This document shows positions 28,976-47,383 of a DNA stretch of 64,000 nt, one piece after another. The DNA lies in sequence record OR836606.1; one strand, 5' to 3'. How positions within the stretch are numbered: the first letter of the stretch is position 1; every line of letters starts with the position of its first letter. Position numbers and translations under genes: made by a program. The notes under the pieces are model-generated. The model did not search any database, was not told where the DNA came from, and was given only the letters and a program-made list of their open reading frames with translations.

Positions 28976-31339
28976 TTATATACTACAGCTTTCACATTCA
29001 ACAATACCTTGAGAACTTTCATCATGATCAGGTGAATAAATACGAGTATAATACATAGATTTAATACCTTTACTATAAGCATAGTTACGTAATCTACTAA
29101 TATCACGAGTAGTAGTTTCTTTATCTAAAGAATCTTTTTTCCATTCATAAAGTTCTGGATCAAGTTCATTCATTAAGTAAATATTCATAGAAATACCTTG
29201 ATCTACGTGATATTGAGCTTCTGAATATAAATCAATCATATCTCTCATATCTAATTGGTAAGCATTTTTCTTAAAGTATTCAAAGTTGTCTGGTGTAATA
29301 CCTGGCGCTGGATAGAAAGTAGTGCCTGTTTTACCTTCTACACGTTCTTCAATTAACTCAACAATAGGATGAATTGAAGGCGATACTTCTCTAACATAGC
29401 CAATAGACCCATTAGGAGCTACAGCTAATCTATTCTGATTGTATAAACCATCCATAACAATATTATTTCTTAATTGTTCCCAATCGCTATCAGATGGAAT
29501 AAAAATGTCTTTAAATAATTCTTTAACTTTTTCAGTACGTGGTTGAATATTTTTACCAATATAACGTTTATCAAAATAAGAACCATCAGCATATTCAGTT
29601 TTCTCAAATAAATAGAATGATTCATTTTTCTCTTTAGCAATTTTATTTGATTCAACTAATGTCCAATAATTTAATAACATGAAATAAATATTAGTGAAAT
29701 CTTTAGATTCTTCAGAACCATATTGAATGTGGTTTTCAGCTAAGAAAGTGTGTAATCCCATAGCACCTAAACCAACTGTATGAAATAAATCATTTCCTTT
29801 TTTAATTGTAGGTACAGCTTCGATATTAGATTTTTCAGATACTGAATTTAAACTTCTTAACATAGTTCCTACTGATTTACCAAAATCTTCCGATTTCATT
29901 AAACCGGATACAATAGTTGAAGCTAAGTTACATGAAATATCTGTTCCTGTTTTAACATATTGTTGATTATCATCAACTAATGAAGGATATTGTACCTGCA
30001 AAATTTCTGAACACAAATTACTCATTTTAATTTTACCATGACTGATTGGATTAGCTCTATTAGCTGTATCAATATTAATGATATAAGGATATCCAGATTC
30101 TTGTTGTAATTTACTAATTGTGGTTTCTAAATCACGAGCATACATTTTATCTTTACTAATACGTTTATCATCTACAAAGATATCATAATAAGTATTAAAG
30201 TCAATACTGTCGAAATCCAAATCGTAATATTTTTTAATGTCATATGGGCTAAATGTATATAATGATTTATTTTCTTTAACTAACTGATAATATTTGTCTG
30301 GAACGGTTAAACCTAATGAAATAGTTTTTAATCTCACTTTCTCATCAGCATTTTCTTTCTTAGTATCTAAGAATTTCACTACATCTTTATGGAAAATATT
30401 TAAATAGAGCGCACCTGCACCATTACGTTGCATTTATATTAACTATATGAATTTCATATAGATTAGACTATATCTTATACTTCTAATAAGTATTATTATA
30501 TTTAATCGTTGGACAATCATAAAGATTGATGCTGATTAAGTTTATAAACTTTTCCAGCAATTAATAATATTTATACTGAGCCATTAAAATTAACCCAGTT
30601 GATTTACATATGATAATGTATCTTCAAATACTTTCATAACCGGAACTACTCCTGAAGCGGCACCTTCTACACCTTTAATTGGATCATTATCTGCACGTAG
30701 ATTTGATAAACTGATTCCACAGCCTCCGCCTCTTTTACTTAATTGAGCTACGTTAGTAACAGTTCTATAAATTGAAGCTAGAGAATCTTCCATTGTAACT
30801 AAGAAACAACTTATTAACTCACCAGAACGTTTTCTACCTGAATTGAGAAATGTCGGTGTAGCGGGTTGGAAAGTTCCTGTAATGATTTCTTTAGCGATAT
30901 TCTTAGCTAATTCTTCATCTCCATCAGCTAAATATAAAGCTACAAATAAAATTCTATCTTCATATAGTTCTAATAAAATCTCCCCAGCATCATCTTTCAT
31001 TGCATACTGTTCATAGAATTTTTTAGCCCCCAATAAGCGAGTAAATCTATGCTTATAAGCCATTAATTCTTTCATTAATCCTTTAATGAACTCAAAATCA
31101 TAATTATTGATCATATCGCCATCAATATAATCATTATCAACTAGATAATTAATTTTTTCTTTATATGTTTTAAAGTATCTTACATTCTTATTAACTGAAT
31201 CTAAGAAATATTTTTTAACTGAAGCTAATTCAAATTCTAAATCTAAATTACCGTCTTTTAATTGTGACCCTCTTGAGTTTAATTCGTTATATGAATAATC
31301 TTTAAATTTTTCTGAAGTTAAATCAATTTCTTTTGGCAT
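28976..31339 (-). CDS. nrdE: Class Ib RNR alpha subunit, spliced: join(30593-31339, 28976-30430), 733 aa
   Basis: FQPATPTFLN, SCF, SNLCSEI, CNL, VAPNGS, KSMYYTR, C-terminal CESC; splicing gives YVNQLG|QRNGAG. Confidence 0.92.
30431..30592 (-). ncRNA. Minimal group I intron (162 nt) in nrdE
   Basis: Exon ends in U, intron ends in G; P1 ACUGGGU/GCUCAGU with U.G at the splice site; core AAUUGCUGGAAA, AAUCAGCA, CAACGAUUAAA, AAGAUAUAGUC; removal restores the frame. Confidence 0.9.
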
Positions 31340-34796: not shown

Positions 34797-37700
34797 TTAA
34801 TCTAATAGATTCATTATTCTTTTTGATTTCTGATCTGGAGAAGAATTGTTATTCTGTAATAAAGGATTACTAGGGAGATTACCATCAATAATTCCACTAA
34901 TACGTTTCATGGATGCAATATCTTTTCTTCTAGCTTGTCTTTCTTTTTCAATTTCTTCTGCATTATCTCCATCTGCAGATACCATTGAACCGTATTTAAC
35001 TTTAACAAATTTCTTAATGTCTTTCTCATAGTAATAAGCATATAAACAAAATAGATAACTCATAAGTAAATCGTCATGTCCGCCATCAGGGTGATCAATT
35101 CTACCTTTTTTCATTTGAAGGGATTTTATTTGTTGGAATAATGGTTTATTATTAACTAAATAAGGTTTTTCTTCAACAATCATTGATAAAATTTCATTGA
35201 GCATTAGATCTGCTATATAAATTCATGAGTTTAATTTAATTAAAATGAATTTATTCGACTTCGTCATCACTCTGACTTACTTTGCACTTTAAGTTTTTTC
35301 GTTATAAACTACTTCAACAGAAAGCTTTAATCAAAGCAGAGGTTAAAGCTCTTAAGTCATCGCATTTGGACATTTAGAGGAATAAGACCTCATTTAGCCT
35401 GCCCAACAAAACGCTTACCATACAGTTTTAAATTGACAGCAGCGTTATAATCTCTATCCATTTTATGTCCACAATCACAGGAATACCATCTATCTGATAG
35501 TTTCAACTTATCTTCTTTAGTTAGAATTTGGCCACAATTAGAACATAATTGAGTTGATGGAAACCATCTGTCAGCTACAATAATAGTATTACCATTGCTT
35601 TCAGCTTTTTGTTCAAGTAAAGTCCTAAACTGTCTCCAATTGGACTGTGCGATTGATTTGGATAGTTTTCTATTTTTAATCATATTTGAAACCTGTAAAT
35701 CTTCAATAGTTATATATTGATAATTGTTAATCAAGTTAGTAGTAATCTTATGAAGATAATCTTTTTTAATATTATTAATTCTATACCATACTTTTTGTAT
35801 TTTGGTTTTCAATACATTGTATTTATTAGAACCATAAACTTTTTTAGATAATCTTTTTTGGTAGTATTTGATTTTATTATAGAGTGAGATTAGTTTATTA
35901 TTTAATGAATGGTATTTTTTAAATTTACCGAAATCATCATTAATAATAGCTAAATCTTTTACACCTAAATCAATACCTACATGACTATTGTTATGAATTA
36001 ATTTTTTACTGTTATCAACTTTCATTACTATCGAAGCGAAATACCTACCAGCATATTTGGATATAGTTACTTCTTGTATAGAATTATAATCTTTGTTTAA
36101 AGGTTCTTTCATTTTAATTAATGAATTTACACCACGCAATTTAAGTTTATTATTTTTCTCACCTTTAATTTGAATAGCGTAAGGATCTTTCCTATAGAAC
36201 CTTGCTCTTAATTTAGATTTCTTTTTAGATTTAAATTTAGGATATTTACCATATCCTTTCCACATCATATTAAATGCTTTACCTAGATCTTCTGTAGAAG
36301 TTTCAATTATCATGATAATTTGATCTTTCTCCCAATCTTCTTTACATTTTTTAAGTTCATCACGAACTCTACGATGAGTTGGTTTTGGTAAAGATTTATC
36401 AATTTGATAATTATTCCACATATATTTCCATTTATTAAGTGCCTTGTTATAAATATAACGACTATATCCAAAAGCTTGATTAAATATCTCTCGTTGTTCT
36501 TTATTAGGTTTCAATTCGATTTTTATAGATTTGTACATGTGATTTTCACCTCGATTCATATTTCTAAATGATTTAGAATTTATAATTCATTGTTTAATAT
36601 ATCGAGGTAAAAATTATTTTAATTAAATTAAACTCACGAATTCCAGAAATCCCTTTCAGGTTCTGTTAAATAGCAAGACTATATCATGATCCATTAAATC
36701 AATGGACCCCTCGCACTTCGAAAAACTTCTGATGAAGTTAATCTACTCTACTCACTTCACATAGTATTTCAACTATGCTTATTCAGGTTAATCAAACCTG
36801 TGCTTTCGATAGTCGTTGAACGTTTATCCATCATGTGGACACTTCGCTGCTAGACTTCCCATTGTTTACAAACTTTAGCGATCTAGGGTTTTCACCTAGA
36901 CTTGTTTTCAGCATAGTTCATCTTAGAGATTTTTTCTGTCTTTCGACTGCATGTCACGCTATCCATTACTGGCATACGTTGTAGCTCTCTAAGCTTTAGG
37001 GTTTTACAAGCAATTCACGAGGTATTTTTACCACTAATTTCATGAATTAAAATTAGTTTAATTTACTTATATAGTAGCAGAGCGTGAAACATGAATTAAT
37101 AAGAATTTAAGTCTTAATTCACTTAAAATATCTTAAATTAAAACTGTTTCGTTACTCTAGATTTTTTAGTTGTATCAATACCATATCTTCTTACTTGTTT
37201 GGTAACTTTATTAGTGCTATTTCTAGGAATTTCATTAAATACTTGCTTATTAACTTCAACTTGTTTTTCTGCTACTCTATTCTTTAATGAGTAGAAAATA
37301 TTGTCTCCAATACCATCAGTTTGAATCATATCTTCTATCATTACAGTACCTGCATAGTTACGTTCAGGTATTAATACTGCATTAGGTATATAAAGCGTAA
37401 TAAGTTCTTTAATTAATTTTCTAAAAGTAGGTCCATTAATTACATTATTTTGGAAAATCATTACAGGCTCTAATGTACCTGGATCAACTACAGTAAATGC
37501 AGTATTATCTCGACCAAGACCACCAGATATATCAATACCAACAAGCCAGTTCTTTTCATGCATATTATCCATCTTTTTAACCATATAAACATAATAAGTT
37601 TTACCATTTATTTTAAAATCAATAGTATTATATATCTCTTTATTTGCATATAATGATAATTCTGACATTTGTTGTTCATCAAATAAAGAATCATCGTTAC

Positions 37701-39379
37701 TAAACGCCCATTCAAGAAGTATCTCACGTTTAACTGCTTCTAAAGAACCAATTTGACGTTTTTGCTTTTCTAACCAAGCATCATCTTTACCTAATTCTTT
37801 ATATGAATATTCTATATAGATGAATGAATTGCCTGAATTACTTTCCATATACTCTTCTAATTTTTCATTACCCTCTTCTTCAGAATTAATGTAATAATCA
37901 TATATTTTTTCTGTCCATTGTGCTGCATCATTCATTTGCTCAAAGAAGAACTGTCCTTGAGGTACATCCAAAGTACTCATATTTTTTATCCTATATTAAT
38001 TTAATATAGATAAGACTATATCTTAGTATATTATAATACCATTTATTATTTAGTCGTTAAACAAGTATTATCAACTTGATGCTGATTGTCTTAATAAAGA
38101 TTTTCCAGCAATTAAATAAATAAGCCCAGTTTAATTTTAGGCGTTGTTGTAATTAGAAGACCATAAGGTGTGCCATTTTTCTTAGCTATTGCAGATGCTG
38201 TAGAAACTGCCTTTTAATATTAATCTACATGGATTCCATATAGAATAGACTATATCTTAGTATTATATTAATACTATTTATTATTTAGTCGTTGAACACT
38301 ATAAATAGCGATGCTGATCGTCTTAATAAAGATTTTCCAGCAATTAAATAAATAAGCCCGCATTAATTTCAGGCCTCATTGCTTCAAACATTGTTTGGTT
38401 GTGTGGAATGAATGCCCACTCATCCAACCAGACCATAGGTCATTATGTTAACTATATTTAAAAAATATAGATCAGACTATATCATACTCATATAAATAAG
38501 TGAATATATTTAGTCGTTGAACACTATAATTAGTGATGCTGATTAAGATAATAATCTATTCCAGCAATTAATATTCTTTTACTACTGCAACTATCTACAG
38601 TAGAACCACGCTATTTTAGACTATATCTTCAATTTTATAATTGTCTTTTATTTAGTCGTTGAACACATATGTGATGCTGATCAAATTAAATAATTTGTCC
38701 CAGCAATTAAAAAGATTTATAGCAAGCCATGATATTAACCTGCTTTATTTGCACTCTCACTGTTAGTCGGAGGTGAAACTGTTTTAATAGTATTGTTATT
38801 ACTAGCTAATTGAAATTCGTTGATCTTATCTCTATCATTTTTATCTCCAAAATTAGCTAATACATATTCAGGTAAACATTTCTCTTTAAATAAGTTTTTA
38901 AGACGTTTTAAGTTCTCAGTTGTATCTGAATAAGATTTGTGTGTAAATAACATTGTATAGTTACTACCTACTAATAACATTATCCATGAATAATAACATA
39001 CTGCTGAATATGTTTTATAGTGCTGACGTGGAAGCATTATAGCTGTATCTAAATTGTGTAACATACAAAATGTCATCGCCATATTACCTCTATGAAGTTC
39101 ATACATAACCTTACCGCCAGGAACAGGAACTCTTATAACTTCCCTTAAATAAAACCATATATTAATTTTAGCTTCCCTTAATACACGGGTTTTCATTTCA
39201 TCAGAAAGTTCAGGATCCCAAGGATCTACTCCTACAAGATTTTTATCATATAGAGTTAATGGAATCCCATAATTTCTGACGTTGTTCTTCTTAAGATCCC
39301 TAGCCACTCTTAAAAAACTAACATTATTAGTTTTATAATCGTAATAAACTTTTTTCTTTAATTTTGGTTTAATTGTCAT
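34797..39379 (-). CDS. terL: Terminase large subunit in six exons: 38738-39379, 38597-38610, 38371-38440, 38139-38210, 37155-37977, 34797-35209 (677 aa)
   Basis: Walker A LPRQHYKT; splicing gives KAG|RGSTV|PMVWLDEWAF...MRP|AVS...ITTTP|STL...KKSR|DLML; nuclease motifs GIDISGG, ERN, HDDLLM; exon total 2034 nt is divisible by 3. Confidence 0.88.
35210..35400 (-). ncRNA. Putative TnpB omega-RNA scaffold (guide would extend into terminase exon 6)
   Basis: Structured non-coding right end after the tnpB stop (AAGAGCTTTAA/TTAAAGCTTT, TGACTT/AAGTCA); position follows known TnpB biology; 5' boundary approximate. Confidence 0.6.
35390..36538 (-). CDS. tnpB: TnpB RNA-guided nuclease (IS200/IS605/IS607 family), 382 aa
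   Basis: HTH N-terminus IKIELKPNKEQ; RuvC GIDLG, IEDL, DRDYNAA all intact; CSNCG/CDCG zinc finger; GAGGTG SD favours ATG at 36538. Confidence 0.92.
   Translation of the reverse strand: MYKSIKIELKPNKEQREIFNQAFGYSRYIYNKALNKWKYMWNNYQIDKSLPKPTHRRVRDELKKCKEDWEKDQIIMIIETSTEDLGKAFNMMWKGYGKYPKFKSKKKSKLRARFYRKDPYAIQIKGEKNNKLKLRGVNSLIKMKEPLNKDYNSIQEVTISKYAGRYFASIVMKVDNSKKLIHNNSHVGIDLGVKDLAIINDDFGKFKKYHSLNNKLISLYNKIKYYQKRLSKKVYGSNKYNVLKTKIQKVWYRINNIKKDYLHKITTNLINNYQYITIEDLQVSNMIKNRKLSKSIAQSNWRQFRTLLEQKAESNGNTIIVADRWFPSTQLCSNCGQILTKEDKLKLSDRWYSCDCGHKMDRDYNAAVNLKLYGKRFVGQAK
36548..36608 (-). promoter_or_regulatory. Hairpin sequestering the tnpB SD, with an internal late promoter (36583-36594)
   Basis: ACCTCGAT pairs with ATCGAGGT, which contains the SD; AACA ATGAAT TA lies between the arms. 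Confidence 0.65.
37978..38138 (-). ncRNA. Minimal group I intron (161 nt), terminase intron 4
   Basis: After ...ACGCCU, ends AUG; P1 GCCU/GGGC; AAUUGCUGGAAA, AAUCAGCAUCA, UUUAACGACUAAA, AAGAUAUAGUC. Confidence 0.88.
38211..38370 (-). ncRNA. Minimal group I intron (160 nt), terminase intron 3
   Basis: After AGGCCU, ends AAG; P1 AGGCCU/GGGCUU; full core motifs. Confidence 0.9.
38441..38596 (-). ncRNA. Minimal group I intron (156 nt), terminase intron 2
   Basis: P1 CUACUGU/GCAGUAG with terminal U.G; ends AUG; full core motifs. Confidence 0.9.
38611..38737 (-). ncRNA. Minimal group I intron (127 nt), terminase intron 1
   Basis: P1 AGCAGGU/GCUUGCU; P4 UGCUG/CAGCA; P5 CAAAUU/AAUUUG; P7 GACUA/UAGUC; P8 CAAUU/AAUUG; ends UAG only 8 nt after P7. 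Confidence 0.88.
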
Positions 39380-41789: not shown

Positions 41790-43394
41790 TTATCGAGCGT
41801 ATACTGAACCGTTGTTGTTTTTGATTGTAATACGTCCAATGATCGGAACGAATGATTCAACTGTATATCTACGAGTCATCATCATGTTAGGAACATTAGG
41901 GTTACGAGTATTTAAGTAACCTCCACCATTTACAACATTGAATGTGTAAGGGTAGAACATAAATGTTTTATAGTTATCTTGTTGAGGGACAGCAATAATA
42001 GTCAATTCACCTTGACGAACTAAGTCAGAACCGATAATACGGTAGTTAGCAGTACCTGAAGCAGCACCTAATGAATAGTTAATTTTGATTCCGTTAGAAT
42101 ACGCATCAGCGTTACGGTCTCCACCATTGAAAGTCCAAGAAACGTTAGGAATTAAACGAACGTCTAATGGGTTACCAACGATAACGAATTGAACATCATA
42201 TAATTTATAATCATTTTTCATTGATTGAGTAGTGTGGTCGATTACTTCACGTAAACCTTCTAACCAATCTTTAGGATGTGCGCTGTAATCACTATGTGGG
42301 AATACATCGAAGCTGAAATGATATTTAGCATCAGTTTCTTTATATTCACGATCTAAGAATTCAATAATGTCTAAGTCAACTTTTTGACTAGATAATTGAG
42401 ACATAGTTTCTGATAAACGAGCAACGCCATCGATATCATAAGTAGCTTTCATATCTTGAATTACTTCAAGAGGTACTGTAGCTTCGATGTGTTGAGCTGT
42501 ATCAATAACAACATCTTTACGAGTTAATCCAAGTTCAACGTTTGTAGCTGAAGTATGTTGTTCTGAAGCTACATAACCTTTGACTTTAACATCAGTTAAT
42601 TTACCTGAAGCAGAAGTCAAAGTAAGTTCACCTGAAGAAACATCCACTTTACCTAAGATAGTGTCAGTTTCAACTTCACCATCACCATTTGTAGGATATT
42701 TAATTTGTCCTACTAATGTGTCATTGTCTTGTAATTTAACTACGTTAGAACCTAATTCAACGAATCCAGCTTCAGAAGTACGTTCATCATATGAATCGCT
42801 CCATTTAGCTTCAACGATTTTGAATTTACGATCTAAACGGTCAATACCTTTACGAACTTCTTTACCTTCTTTTAATCCAGTAAATAAATCGTAGTCAGTA
42901 ATTTTTCCACCGTCAACTTGGATATCTTCTTTAATTTGAACTAATCCAACTAGAGTTTCAGGAGTGTTGTTAATTGATTCTGGTAAAGCATGTCGGTTAC
43001 CATCTGCATCTACAACATATGGAGTTAAGATTGGAACTGTAAAGTTTGGTTTATTAGCAACTTGAGTTGGTAGAGCTTCAGTTAAAGCTAAACGAGCCCA
43101 TAGTTTAACTAAAATAGGCATAGAAAGTGAAGCGTAAGGTTGGATAGGACCCATTGAAGATTCCATTAAGATTTCTTCACGAGTATTGTCTAACATTCCA
43201 GCTAAAGCTTCTCCTTCAGCAGCGTCAAAACCTTCTAATAATTGATCTTTATAACTTTCAAATACTGCATCATCAGTAGCAATAGCAGCGAAATCTCCGC
43301 CGATAGTACTAAGATTATATGATTCATTAATAGAATTTTCAATATCTTCTAAACGAATCGAAAATTCATCTTTAATTCTGTTTGGGTTTAACAT
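41790..43394 (-). CDS. Major capsid protein (534 aa precursor)
   Basis: Strong SD, own late promoter and terminator; HK97-fold-like order (MGPIQP...; EVIQDMKATYDID; VIVGNP; RY at C-terminus); near protease and terminase. Confidence 0.8.
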   Translation of the reverse strand: MLNPNRIKDEFSIRLEDIENSINESYNLSTIGGDFAAIATDDAVFESYKDQLLEGFDAAEGEALAGMLDNTREEILMESSMGPIQPYASLSMPILVKLWARLALTEALPTQVANKPNFTVPILTPYVVDADGNRHALPESINNTPETLVGLVQIKEDIQVDGGKITDYDLFTGLKEGKEVRKGIDRLDRKFKIVEAKWSDSYDERTSEAGFVELGSNVVKLQDNDTLVGQIKYPTNGDGEVETDTILGKVDVSSGELTLTSASGKLTDVKVKGYVASEQHTSATNVELGLTRKDVVIDTAQHIEATVPLEVIQDMKATYDIDGVARLSETMSQLSSQKVDLDIIEFLDREYKETDAKYHFSFDVFPHSDYSAHPKDWLEGLREVIDHTTQSMKNDYKLYDVQFVIVGNPLDVRLIPNVSWTFNGGDRNADAYSNGIKINYSLGAASGTANYRIIGSDLVRQGELTIIAVPQQDNYKTFMFYPYTFNVVNGGGYLNTRNPNVPNMMMTRRYTVESFVPIIGRITIKNNNGSVYAR

Positions 43395-45181: not shown

Positions 45182-45209
45182 ATCCTATTCATATTTTCAT
45201 TAAGGTTAA

Positions 45210-45247
45210 TATTCTATTGTTAAAATTGCTTATCAAACATTTAAATA
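45210..45247. promoter_or_regulatory. Back-to-back late promoters (45210-45221 minus; 45236-45247 plus)
   Basis: AACA ATAGAA TA (minus) and AACA TTTAAA TA (plus) in a short divergent intergenic gap. Confidence 0.6.
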
Positions 45248-45283
45248 TTCTAAATTTAATATATGAAAGGAAGTTAAATAAAT

Positions 45284-46645
45284 ATGTCTAAAGATATAAA
45301 AGCTTATCTTATTAATGAATCTAACACAACTTCTCAACCAGAAGTAGTTCAAGATAATAATAAATCGGTTAGATTCATTGCTGAGTTACAAGAAGCTGAT
45401 AGACAAAACCGTAATGGTCGTGTTTATCGTAAAGATGTTATTCAAAGTGGTTTAGATAGTCCAGTAATACAAGAAAAATTAGCAAGAAAAACTTTTTATG
45501 GTGAGTTTTAGGTTAAATGGCTCACATTAAATTATATTAATTGCTGGAAAAGATTATTATCTTAATCAGCATCAACTTAATACAAGTTGTTCAACGACTA
45601 AATATATAGCCTAGATGATATAGTCTAACCTTTATTAAAATGATAAAGAATAATAATTTGCAGGACATCCTTTAAGTGATGAACCTAAACGACAAATGTA
45701 TATTGATCAACGTAATATTTCTCATATCGTTACTAGAACATGGTGGAATGGTAATAAATTAATGGCAGAAGTAGAAACGGCACAAACAGCAGCTGGTAAA
45801 GATATGAAAGGTTTAATCGGACAAAAGTCTGACGTATCTTTCTCAATGCGTGGTTTCAGTAAAATTAATAGAACACCTTCTGGCGAAGTTGAAGTTACTA
45901 AACCTTTAAGATTAATCTGTTAAATTGTAGCAGCTTTATATAGAAATATATATTGAAAAAGAATATTAATTGCTAAGAAGTTTAATTAAGCCAATTAGCA
46001 TCAACTTAATACAAGTTGTTCAACGACTAAATATATTTACTCTTAATAAGAGTATGATATAGTCTAATCTTAATAGTAAGATCTATTAAGTTAATATAAT
46101 GTACGATAAAATAAACCTTGTCGCTTCTTAAAGCAATTTAAGAATGATAAAACTATTAATTGCTAAAATCTTTTATTAAAGTAATTAGCATCAACTTAAT
46201 AAAAGTTGTTCAAAGACTAAATATAGTTTATCCTTTTATAGGATAATGATATAGTCTGATCTATATTATACTAATATAGATAACATAAATGTGGGTAGTA
46301 ATTCCATCTCATCAAGATTCTTACATTCAAAATATTATTTCAGAAGGACACAATAATTATAATCCTAATGATTTACAAATGGTAAATGAATCAATTGATA
46401 TGTTCACTAATGGTAAAATTACTGAATTTTCTCCTAGAGAAGTTTTAACTTATATTAAAGAAAATTCAGATAATGTAAAATACATTGCTGAAGATATGGG
46501 GTTTGCTGGAGTTGATGAATCTAATATCAGTTATGATAAAGGATCTCAATTAGCTTCAATTAGAGAAAGTAATAAAACTATTAAAGTTTTCTTAGAAGAA
46601 TCTGTTCTTAATGGACTTGATGATTTCTATAGAAACTTTAAATAA
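45284..46645 (+). CDS. Prohead core protease (T4 gp21-like) in four exons: 45284-45506, 45661-45920, 46102-46107, 46292-46645 (280 aa)
   Basis: NRNGRVY; splicing gives GE-S-GHP; ISHIV; SFSMRG; IC|YD|WVVIPSH; exon total 843 nt is divisible by 3. Confidence 0.9.
45507..45660 (+). ncRNA. Minimal group I intron (154 nt), protease intron 1
   Basis: P1 GUGAGU/GCUCAC; AAUUGCUGGAAA, AAUCAGCAUCA, GUUCAACGACUAAA, GAUAUAGUC; ends UUG. Confidence 0.9.
45921..46101 (+). ncRNA. Minimal group I intron (181 nt), protease intron 2
   Basis: P1 CUGU/GCAG; compensatory P4 UGCUAA/UUAGCA; R and S elements; ends AUG. Confidence 0.88.
46108..46291 (+). ncRNA. Minimal group I intron (184 nt), protease intron 3
   Basis: P1 CGAU/GUCG; P4 UGCUAA/UUAGCA; GUUCAAAGACUAAA; GAUAUAGUC; ends AUG. 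Confidence 0.88.
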
Positions 46646-46669
46646 TATGTATGGATGTGATTAAAGGTT

Positions 46670-47383
46670 ATGTTAACCAATACAGAAATACTTAATTATA
46701 TTGAACGTGATGTAGGTTTCATGTTCACTGATTTAGAATTAAAACCTGATGATATTATTAAAACAGTGGAAAGATTCACTATTCCTACATTTAGTAAATT
46801 TCATCCTAAACAAGAAAGAGTAATTGTAAAACCAGAAGATAAAGTAGAAGGTACTACAAATATATATTATATTGATTCTGAAAATCCTATAGTTAATATT
46901 AATAGAGTAATTGGAGCTAATAATCCTATTACTAATTTAACAGGGTATGCAGGTAACATGAGCTCTTATGCAGGATTTGCTATGGGTAACCCAATTGATG
47001 GACAAATGATGTCTGATTTAATGGCGATCAATTTATCTCCATCTACTTTTAGATATCATCATCCTAATAAAATAGAAATATTGAATTCTGCTGTAATCGG
47101 TTCAGTTAATTTACTAATTGTTCTAAATACTTATCATGATAAACATTTTGGTTCTATACCAAATAATATGCATGATTATTTCTTAGAATTAGCTTCTTAT
47201 GATGTTCAAATATCATTATATGCTATGAGAAGTAGATTCCAGAACTTACAAACTACTTTTGGAGAGTTAAATCTTAATATGGATGATTTACGTGAAGCAA
47301 AAGATAAACGTAAAGAATTAGTAGAAAAGATGGAAAATTATTCTATATTTAATAGTAACAGAAAGAAATTATATTTCGGTTAA
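46670..47383 (+). CDS. Putative neck/head-completion protein
   Basis: Co-oriented after the protease; 237 aa; positional inference. Confidence 0.4.
   Translation: MLTNTEILNYIERDVGFMFTDLELKPDDIIKTVERFTIPTFSKFHPKQERVIVKPEDKVEGTTNIYYIDSENPIVNINRVIGANNPITNLTGYAGNMSSYAGFAMGNPIDGQMMSDLMAINLSPSTFRYHHPNKIEILNSAVIGSVNLLIVLNTYHDKHFGSIPNNMHDYFLELASYDVQISLYAMRSRFQNLQTTFGELNLNMDDLREAKDKRKELVEKMENYSIFNSNRKKLYFG

Follow-up and report, generated by a model that had tools for sequence, protein, structure and literature searches.

Comparative evidence for a six-nucleotide exon between two mini group I introns in the prohead protease gene of Staphylococcus phage LY01

Can six bases lodged between two introns form an exon of a phage gene and, if so, is their position an accident of intron spread or a device that controls the gene? 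The question is raised by the T4-gp21-like prohead protease locus of Staphylococcus phage LY01, a jumbo phage of 259 kb, in a stretch of DNA consisting of the final 64,000 bases of its record OR836606.1 (the window; bases 45200-46700 are 100% identical to LY01). The record annotates this locus as three separate hypothetical open reading frames (ORFs), and the protein is encoded in an ORF from 45284 and two further ORF segments, from 45661 and from 46292. Matches to the same stretch came from nine related Staphylococcus jumbo phages, and their unequal total match lengths gave an early hint of variable insertions. An initial annotation of the window had proposed that two introns lie six bases apart, that these bases, TACGAT, carry the likely catalytic Asp of the protease, and that skipping them could switch capsid maturation. 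We consider it highly probable that LY01 has a single prohead protease gene that was invaded three times by ORF-less mini group I introns and is spliced normally, the micro-exon being a by-product with no dedicated regulatory role.

Intron-less orthologues provide the most direct check on the splice junctions. In phage PALS_2 the protein (...TFYGESGHPLSDEP...DVSFSMRGF...KPLRLICYDWVVIPSHQ...) is encoded in one uninterrupted coding sequence (CDS) of 843 nucleotides (nt), which equals the sum of the four LY01 exons (223 + 260 + 6 + 354). Both PALS_2 and SA1 lack introns and read ...LRLIC-YD-WVVIPSH..., the same as the four joined exons of LY01, and at the DNA level they carry ...TTAATTTGT TAT GAT TGGGTAGTA... 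where LY01 has TGT, intron 2 (I2), TACGAT, intron 3 (I3) and TGGGTAGTA. At the junction that follows exon 1, joining GAGT to CA across intron 1 (I1) restores ...FYGESGHP.... Each LY01 exon piece shows 99% identity to its PALS_2 counterpart, without frameshift or stop, and removal of the introns restores the reading frame; within the introns, an in-frame TAA forms the first codon of I2 and a TAG stands two codons into I1. An alignment of 13 homologues, 29-100% identical at the protein level, contains two columns exactly between the LIC of exon 2 and the WVV of exon 4, and these are Tyr/Trp-Asp in every homologue. By these comparisons, the agreement of two junction pairs with the frame and residues of the orthologues is far beyond chance, and TACGAT is confirmed as a genuine 6-nt exon between two separate introns. 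The initial annotation was therefore correct in the six-base spacing, which is also borne out by the occurrence of each intron alone at the same site elsewhere, and in the spliced product LIC-YD-WVVIPSH; orthologues lacking the YD pair, which would have spoken against it, were not found among the 13.

All three intervening sequences have the features of group I introns. When the 1.5-kb region was searched alone, the Rfam group I intron model (RF00028) matched I1 at 40.5 bits (E = 1.7e-8), I2 at 33.3 bits (E = 2.3e-6) and I3 at 27.8 bits (E = 1.1e-4), its core aligning end to end (model positions 1-253) in each case. Under our own covariance model, built from seven intron copies in the window, the scores were 144, 135 and 152 bits, respectively; RNAalifold on a MAFFT alignment gave only P4/P5, P7 and P9, and P3, P6 and P8 were entered by hand. 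Across 13 copies from four phages, standard pairs filled 95.2% of the cells in six helices (P3, P4, P5, P6, P8 and P9), and two-sided changes occurred in 21 of 35 pairs. None of 500 shuffles matched these values, while sliding the 3' partners by 1-3 columns gave at most 46% paired cells and eight two-sided pairs. P7 (GACUA/UAGUC, with a bulged base) is invariant and thus contributes no covariation.

A U.G pair sits at the 5' splice site in 14 of 14 introns examined, with each guide fitting its own 5' exon; the P1 of I1, for example, is GUGAGU/GCUCAC. The terminal G of I2 (G46101) and that of I3 (G46291) directly precede the junctions fixed by the intron-less orthologues. An unconstrained minimum free energy (MFE) fold of 45905-46305 returned two separate full sets of P1, P2, P4/P5, P6, P7, P8 and P9, and a search of I2 and I3 for a homing endonuclease found only chance ORFs of 28-30 codons. 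In I1, P8 is almost wholly lost in LY01 (45507-45660), Madawaska and AH12 (ATATAGCCTAGATGATATAG), while the PB50 copy at the I1 site (segment 1773-1947) retains a P8 hairpin (CTTAATTTAATTAAG); any splicing of I1 in LY01 must consequently proceed without a normal P8.

How the six bases serve both introns can be read from the guide sequences (Table 1). All six can pair contiguously with part of the I2 guide as a P10 (UACGAU/AUUGUA, 6/6) that extends P1, in which the splice-site wobble pair is U45920.G45930; among the window's hexamers, only 0.6% could pair likewise with this guide. AH12 carries a compensatory change, with exon UAU and guide AUA in place of the exon UAC and guide GUA of LY01. For I3, P1 consists of CGAU (46104-46107) plus AA paired with UUGUCG (46118-46123), in line with the earlier proposal that this helix draws on four of the six bases, and P10 consists of GGGU (46293-46296) paired with ACCU (46115-46118), a 4-bp helix that is kept in PB50. 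The MFE fold recovers both P1 helices. Because all six bases can enter the P10 of I2 and the last four also enter the P1 of I3, these helices compete for CGAU and are mutually exclusive, and the two introns probably do not finish both reactions at the same moment. The order of splicing is not deducible, since either order leaves the required pairing available afterwards. In a 14-nt micro-exon of the LY01 large terminase gene, P10 and P1 lie side by side, and in an 11-nt micro-exon of AH12 they overlap by one base.

Table 1 Features of the protease locus and of other intron-bearing or adjoining genes, in positions of the window unless a segment is named
Feature	Position	Strand	Description
Prohead protease gene (T4-gp21-like)	45284-46645	+	Interrupted at three points by mini group I introns without ORFs
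Exon 1	45284..45506	+	223 nt; M1 to first base of the Ser75 codon; ORF begins at ATG 45284
Intron 1 (I1)	45507..45660	+	154 nt, mini group I intron; P8 nearly absent
Exon 2	45661..45920	+	260 nt; contains GHP histidine H77 and FSMRG serine S136; terminates ...LRLIC
Intron 2 (I2)	45921..46101	+	181 nt, mini group I intron; directly 3' of the U in TGT; final base G
I2 P1 hairpin	45917..45933	+	CUGU (exon 2) plus UA pairs with guide UAGCAG (45928-45933)
I2 guide part AUUGUA	45924..45929	+	Can pair with all six micro-exon bases (P10), extending P1
Micro-exon TACGAT	46102..46107	+	6 nt; codes for Tyr162-Asp163
Intron 3 (I3)	46108..46291	+	184 nt, mini group I intron; final base G, followed by TGG GTA GTA
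Exon 4	46292..46645	+	354 nt including stop codon; opens WVVIPSH; contains C-terminal scaffold-like part
Major capsid protein gene (gp23-like), adjoining	41793..43394	-	Pfam PF07068 Gp23, E = 1.9e-4, 21.4 bits (cut-off 24.4)
Large terminase gene	39379..34797	-	Contains four mini-introns of the family, A-D
Terminase intron A	38737..38611	-	127 nt, without P2 and P9
Terminase micro-exon cgtggttctactgt	38610..38597	-	14 nt
Terminase intron B	38596..38441	-	
Terminase intron C	38370..38211	-	
Terminase intron D	38138..37978	-	
Non-virion RNA polymerase beta gene	LY01 segment L009 40370-41145	-	Four tandem mini-introns

We next consider what the micro-exon encodes. Pfam searches with the separate exon pieces gave weak or no matches, exon 2 alone reaching Peptidase_S77 (PF03420) at 15.8 bits (cut-off 27), and a 99%-identical intact orthologue has a precomputed match to the same family. 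A PDB search with the single orthologue sequence reached the T4 gp21 structure 5JBL at E = 0.018 only, and a profile of ten homologues reached it at E = 1.3e-10. In the profile alignment, H77 and S136 fall on two Ala residues of the 5JBL chain, H85A and S140A, the substitutions of a 'catalytically dead' T4 gp21 (PMC12991175), while D163 falls on an Asp of T4 gp21. A His/Ser/Asp triad has been described for this protease family (PMC5694885; PMC7411985), and H77, S136 and D163 are invariant in ten full-length homologues. For an AlphaFold model of the orthologue, with a predicted local distance difference test score (pLDDT) of 70-94 in the core, the best PDB matches were chains A-C of 5JBL (Foldseek, E = 6e-9 to 1.5e-8; target TM-score 0.71-0.72); this was the only strong match, with herpesvirus proteases as weaker ones behind it, and the fold is herpesvirus-protease-like. 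The proposal that the micro-exon holds the likely catalytic Asp is supported by this invariance and by the alignment to the gp21 Asp, which make D163 the probable catalytic residue.

The resemblance to T4 gp21 thus extends to the fold, the aligned His/Ser/Asp and an adjoining gp23-like capsid gene. The two proteases nonetheless share only about 20% sequence identity, the T4 gene is without introns, and the LY01-type protease, as modelled from the orthologue, has an additional low-confidence C-terminal region of about 110 residues that is not found in T4 gp21. In phage DC4, a 280-residue protease was detected in virions, and the authors reported no introns by Rfam (PMC10638138).

Comparison with related phages reveals that the introns of this gene come and go separately. 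I2 and I3 occur together only in LY01, or 1 of 10 related phages. Madawaska and PB50 contain I3 without I2, inserted after TGTTACGAT, whereas AH12 and Machias contain I2 at TGT| without I3, plus a different intron 5 nt further downstream, at TGGGT|TGTA. The latter pair (990-1345 in their locus segments) flanks an 11-nt micro-exon, TATGACTGGGT, that encodes Tyr-Asp-Trp and two bases of Val. Intron 2 of AH12 and Machias ends ...GATGTACG, 4 bases longer than that of LY01, as if exon TACG had been absorbed. Introns at the same site are more alike than the two neighbours in LY01: I2 is 87% identical to its AH12 counterpart and I3 is 95% identical to the lone Madawaska intron, compared with 74% between I2 and I3. 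On this sequence evidence, the insertions of I2 and I3 are independent events. I1 was found in Madawaska, AH12 and PB50 and is absent from PALS_2 and SA1. MarsHill and S6 have no intron near Tyr-Asp and instead carry an unrelated, LAGLIDADG-encoding intron at GGT|GAG; the MarsHill intron is 1.17 kb long (segment 802-1967) and lies 4 bases upstream of the I1 site, beside the catalytic His codon. Overall, the gene has at least five distinct insertion sites across the clade, and LY01 joins two of them that lie six bases apart.

The introns have also left traces in public annotations. The Machias CDS is annotated as three joined pieces where the DNA implies four, and the PB50 record (1554-2212) calls the first protease exon 'terminase large subunit' and the second 'homing endonuclease', two probable annotation errors that the introns brought about. 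Three metagenomic homologues (P0012, P0013 and P0017) begin at ...ME(S/A)GHPLS, exactly the I1 site, which suggests that gene callers cut short intron-split protease genes in other uncultured phages too.

The protease introns belong to a larger family of elements 127-184 nt in length. Searching the whole LY01 record with our covariance model identified at least 33 copies, comprising 32 at 89 bits or more and a 127-nt terminase copy that default filters missed and that was recovered with the filters off. By blastn, we found approximately 24 copies in Machias, 23 in AH12, 17 in PB50 and 10 each in Madawaska and MarsHill, and none in PALS_2, S6, DC4 or SA1. Very short exons recur among these copies. 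In the large terminase gene, exons of 70 and 72 nt that hold the Walker B (LDEWAF) and TTTP motifs occur alongside the 14-nt micro-exon; the terminase gene of MarsHill could not be reconstructed in an earlier study (Korn et al., bioRxiv 10.1101/2020.12.14.422802). A 9-nt micro-exon, CCATCAGGT (Pro-Ser-Gly), and an apparent 19-nt exon occur in the non-virion RNA polymerase beta gene; the former fits CCGTCTGGT of the intron-less PALS_2 gene. Further tandem pairs in LY01 are located at L011 32285-32624 (apparent 16-nt exon), L010 1170-1531 (apparent 18-nt exon) and L011 38558-39247. Introns commonly sit at conserved active-site codons (PMC12908238).

These observations can be accommodated by a simple sequence of events. 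A mobile mini-intron family that targets conserved, active-site-encoding sequence would have invaded TGT|TAC and GAT|TGG independently, where the gene is most conserved and encodes the active site, and the LY01 lineage would then have obtained both introns, most simply by recombination between phages with one each. Each intron would leave by the ordinary group I pathway, in which an external G first cuts behind the U in the P1 U.G pair and the released 5' exon then attacks after the terminal G of the intron. The P10 with the I2 guide would align the micro-exon as 3' exon for ligation, and ligation of the six bases on both sides would yield ...Cys-Tyr-Asp-Trp.... We infer that splicing takes place efficiently and constitutively, and that regulation is not a dedicated function of the arrangement. 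Because the arrangement is found in 1 of 10 relatives, the guide fits the micro-exon and other micro-exons occur in unrelated genes, an accident of intron spread is the favoured origin, and the simplest reading of the 6-nt exon is as the tightest of several accidental near-collisions.

Several points weigh against this account. I1, I2 and I3 all score under the RF00028 gathering score of 50, because peripheral elements are missing, and Rfam scans of the whole window (at gathering thresholds and at E <= 0.05) return no intron match. The alignment used to count covariation had been fitted to the covariance model. At 154-184 nt, the introns are well under the 250-500 nt given as typical of group I introns (PMC10964413), and I1 is without a proper P8; with this size and this loss, efficient splicing may need a protein helper. 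Self-splicing in LY01 is a prediction, the catalytic role of D163 is probable from alignment and conservation, and low-level exon skipping may occur, being compatible with the evidence.

A more far-reaching reading would see here a previously undescribed, high-copy ORF-less family, possibly among the smallest natural group I introns, with bases shared between P10 and P1, in which this sharing, in the 6-nt exon, imposes an obligatory splicing order and a measurable quantity of exon-skipped, dead protease co-assembles into the prohead core. As a whole, we regard this combination as unlikely.

Less probable still is programmed alternative splicing, by which some transcripts would be joined TGT|TGG to give a full-length, dead protease without Tyr-Asp, the ratio of products timing or tuning head maturation. 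The skip stays in frame, the lost Asp is invariant and aligns with that of T4 gp21, and the P10 of I2 and the P1 of I3 contend for CGAU. Hybrid folding is conceivable too, given that I2 and I3 are 74% identical with near-identical cores, and for a three-intron gene of phage Twort, transcripts lacking one exon have been described (Landthaler and Shub 1999, as cited in PMC3073962 and PMC11878797). Against such a switch, the I2 guide favours the micro-exon, with six of six pairs compared with two contiguous pairs for exon 4, and calculated duplex energies of -10.4 kcal/mol for exon 2 plus micro-exon versus -5.1 for exon 2 plus exon 4. Its restriction to 1 of 10 phages, while close relatives use zero, one, two or differently placed introns, also speaks against it, as do like micro-exons in the LY01 terminase and RNA polymerase genes, where such a switch is implausible. 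The initial annotation was right that skipping keeps the frame and deletes the Asp, TGT|TGG being in frame, while its suggested switch of capsid maturation is disfavoured by the phage distribution, the guide fit and these other micro-exons.

It is very improbable that poor splicing has disabled the LY01 gene or that misassembly of the deposited sequence created the tandem introns. The very small size of the introns, their scores below the Rfam threshold and the three separate hypothetical ORFs of the record would fit such a view, but exon identity to intact orthologues is 99%, with no frameshift or stop, and this is a single-copy head-maturation protease gene in an isolated, propagated phage. 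A simple assembly duplication is contradicted by the identity of only 74% between I2 and I3. The analogous 11-nt micro-exon in the independent isolates AH12 (China) and Machias (USA) and further micro-exons across the LY01 genome also speak against this view. Weakest of all is the idea that the 371 nt form a composite intron (a twintron, or a unit removed in a single step) with TACGAT intronic. Although such a removal would also be in frame and the Machias GenBank annotation joins three pieces only, [Y/W]D separates the residues of exon 2 from those of exon 4 in 13 of 13 homologues. Both halves, moreover, possess a full P1-P9 set with a U.G pair and terminal G of their own, and either one can be found by itself at its junction in related phages. 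A twintron in particular was rejected, as neither intron is nested in the other: they are side by side, with complete ends, and each is found singly elsewhere.

Micro-exons between group I introns are known from other systems. In placozoan mitochondrial cox1, a micro-exon of 1 bp has a group I intron on either side (Osigus et al. 2017, PMC5436844), and comparably small exons have been mentioned in mitochondrial genes of fungi (PMC5436844). In the placozoan and LY01 cases alike, annotation overlooked a very short exon that sits between two complete group I introns within a highly conserved, essential gene. In contrast to the organellar cox1 gene, with its large introns and RNA-seq support, the LY01 case concerns a phage gene with ORF-less introns of 181 and 184 nt and is known from sequence alone; it further differs in involving one recently expanded intron family and an exon with a probable catalytic residue. 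Compared with the Twort introns, those of LY01 are much smaller and form a high-copy family, and again have been seen at the sequence level. For the same gene in the same clade, prohead protease introns in MarsHill, Madawaska and Machias were inferred by protein alignment and noted to vary in number and position between phages (Korn et al., bioRxiv 10.1101/2020.12.14.422802); the searched text of that study mentions neither micro-exons nor intron RNA structures. A literature search found no report of a phage micro-exon, of this intron family or of LY01. Micro-exons between group I introns and introns in this gene are therefore already known, and the phage case and the intron family are new in the literature searched.

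The locus offers a compact natural system in which two ribozymes recognise the same six bases, bearing on folding, competition, reaction order and minimum exon size. Its practical message is an ordinary one, in that splicing most likely allows normal production of the protease. For annotation, default Rfam searches and ORF calling break essential jumbo-phage genes into 'hypothetical proteins', losing residues even of the weight of a catalytic Asp. The presence of at least 33 ORF-less copies of 127-184 nt also raises the question of how such introns spread quickly between close phages. One candidate was a retron-type reverse transcriptase (LY01 record 73311-74813; L010 23811-25313) that is kept in 10 of 10 Staphylococcus jumbo phages. 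The idea that it tracks intron load, as a hint of spread by reverse splicing, was rejected because it is also present in four mini-intron-free phages.

Finally, we noted two further insertions in the window. A copy of the mini-intron family (30426-30599, minus strand; 123 bits) lies within a ribonucleotide-reductase-like gene, which it splits at ...VNQLG|QRNGAGALYLNIFHKD.... On the same strand, the terminase exon ending at 37138 is followed by an insertion (approximately 37140..35205) in which Rfam gave no match. It opens with a larger, different group I-like element, with GTTCAACGACTA at about 36820 and GATATAGTCT at 36676-36685. An IS605-type TnpB ORF comes next (35393-36559; Pfam OrfB_IS605 4e-22, Cas12f1-like TNB 4e-20), and then the C-terminal terminase exon (35204..34797). 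The insertion resembles an IStron lodged in the terminase gene.

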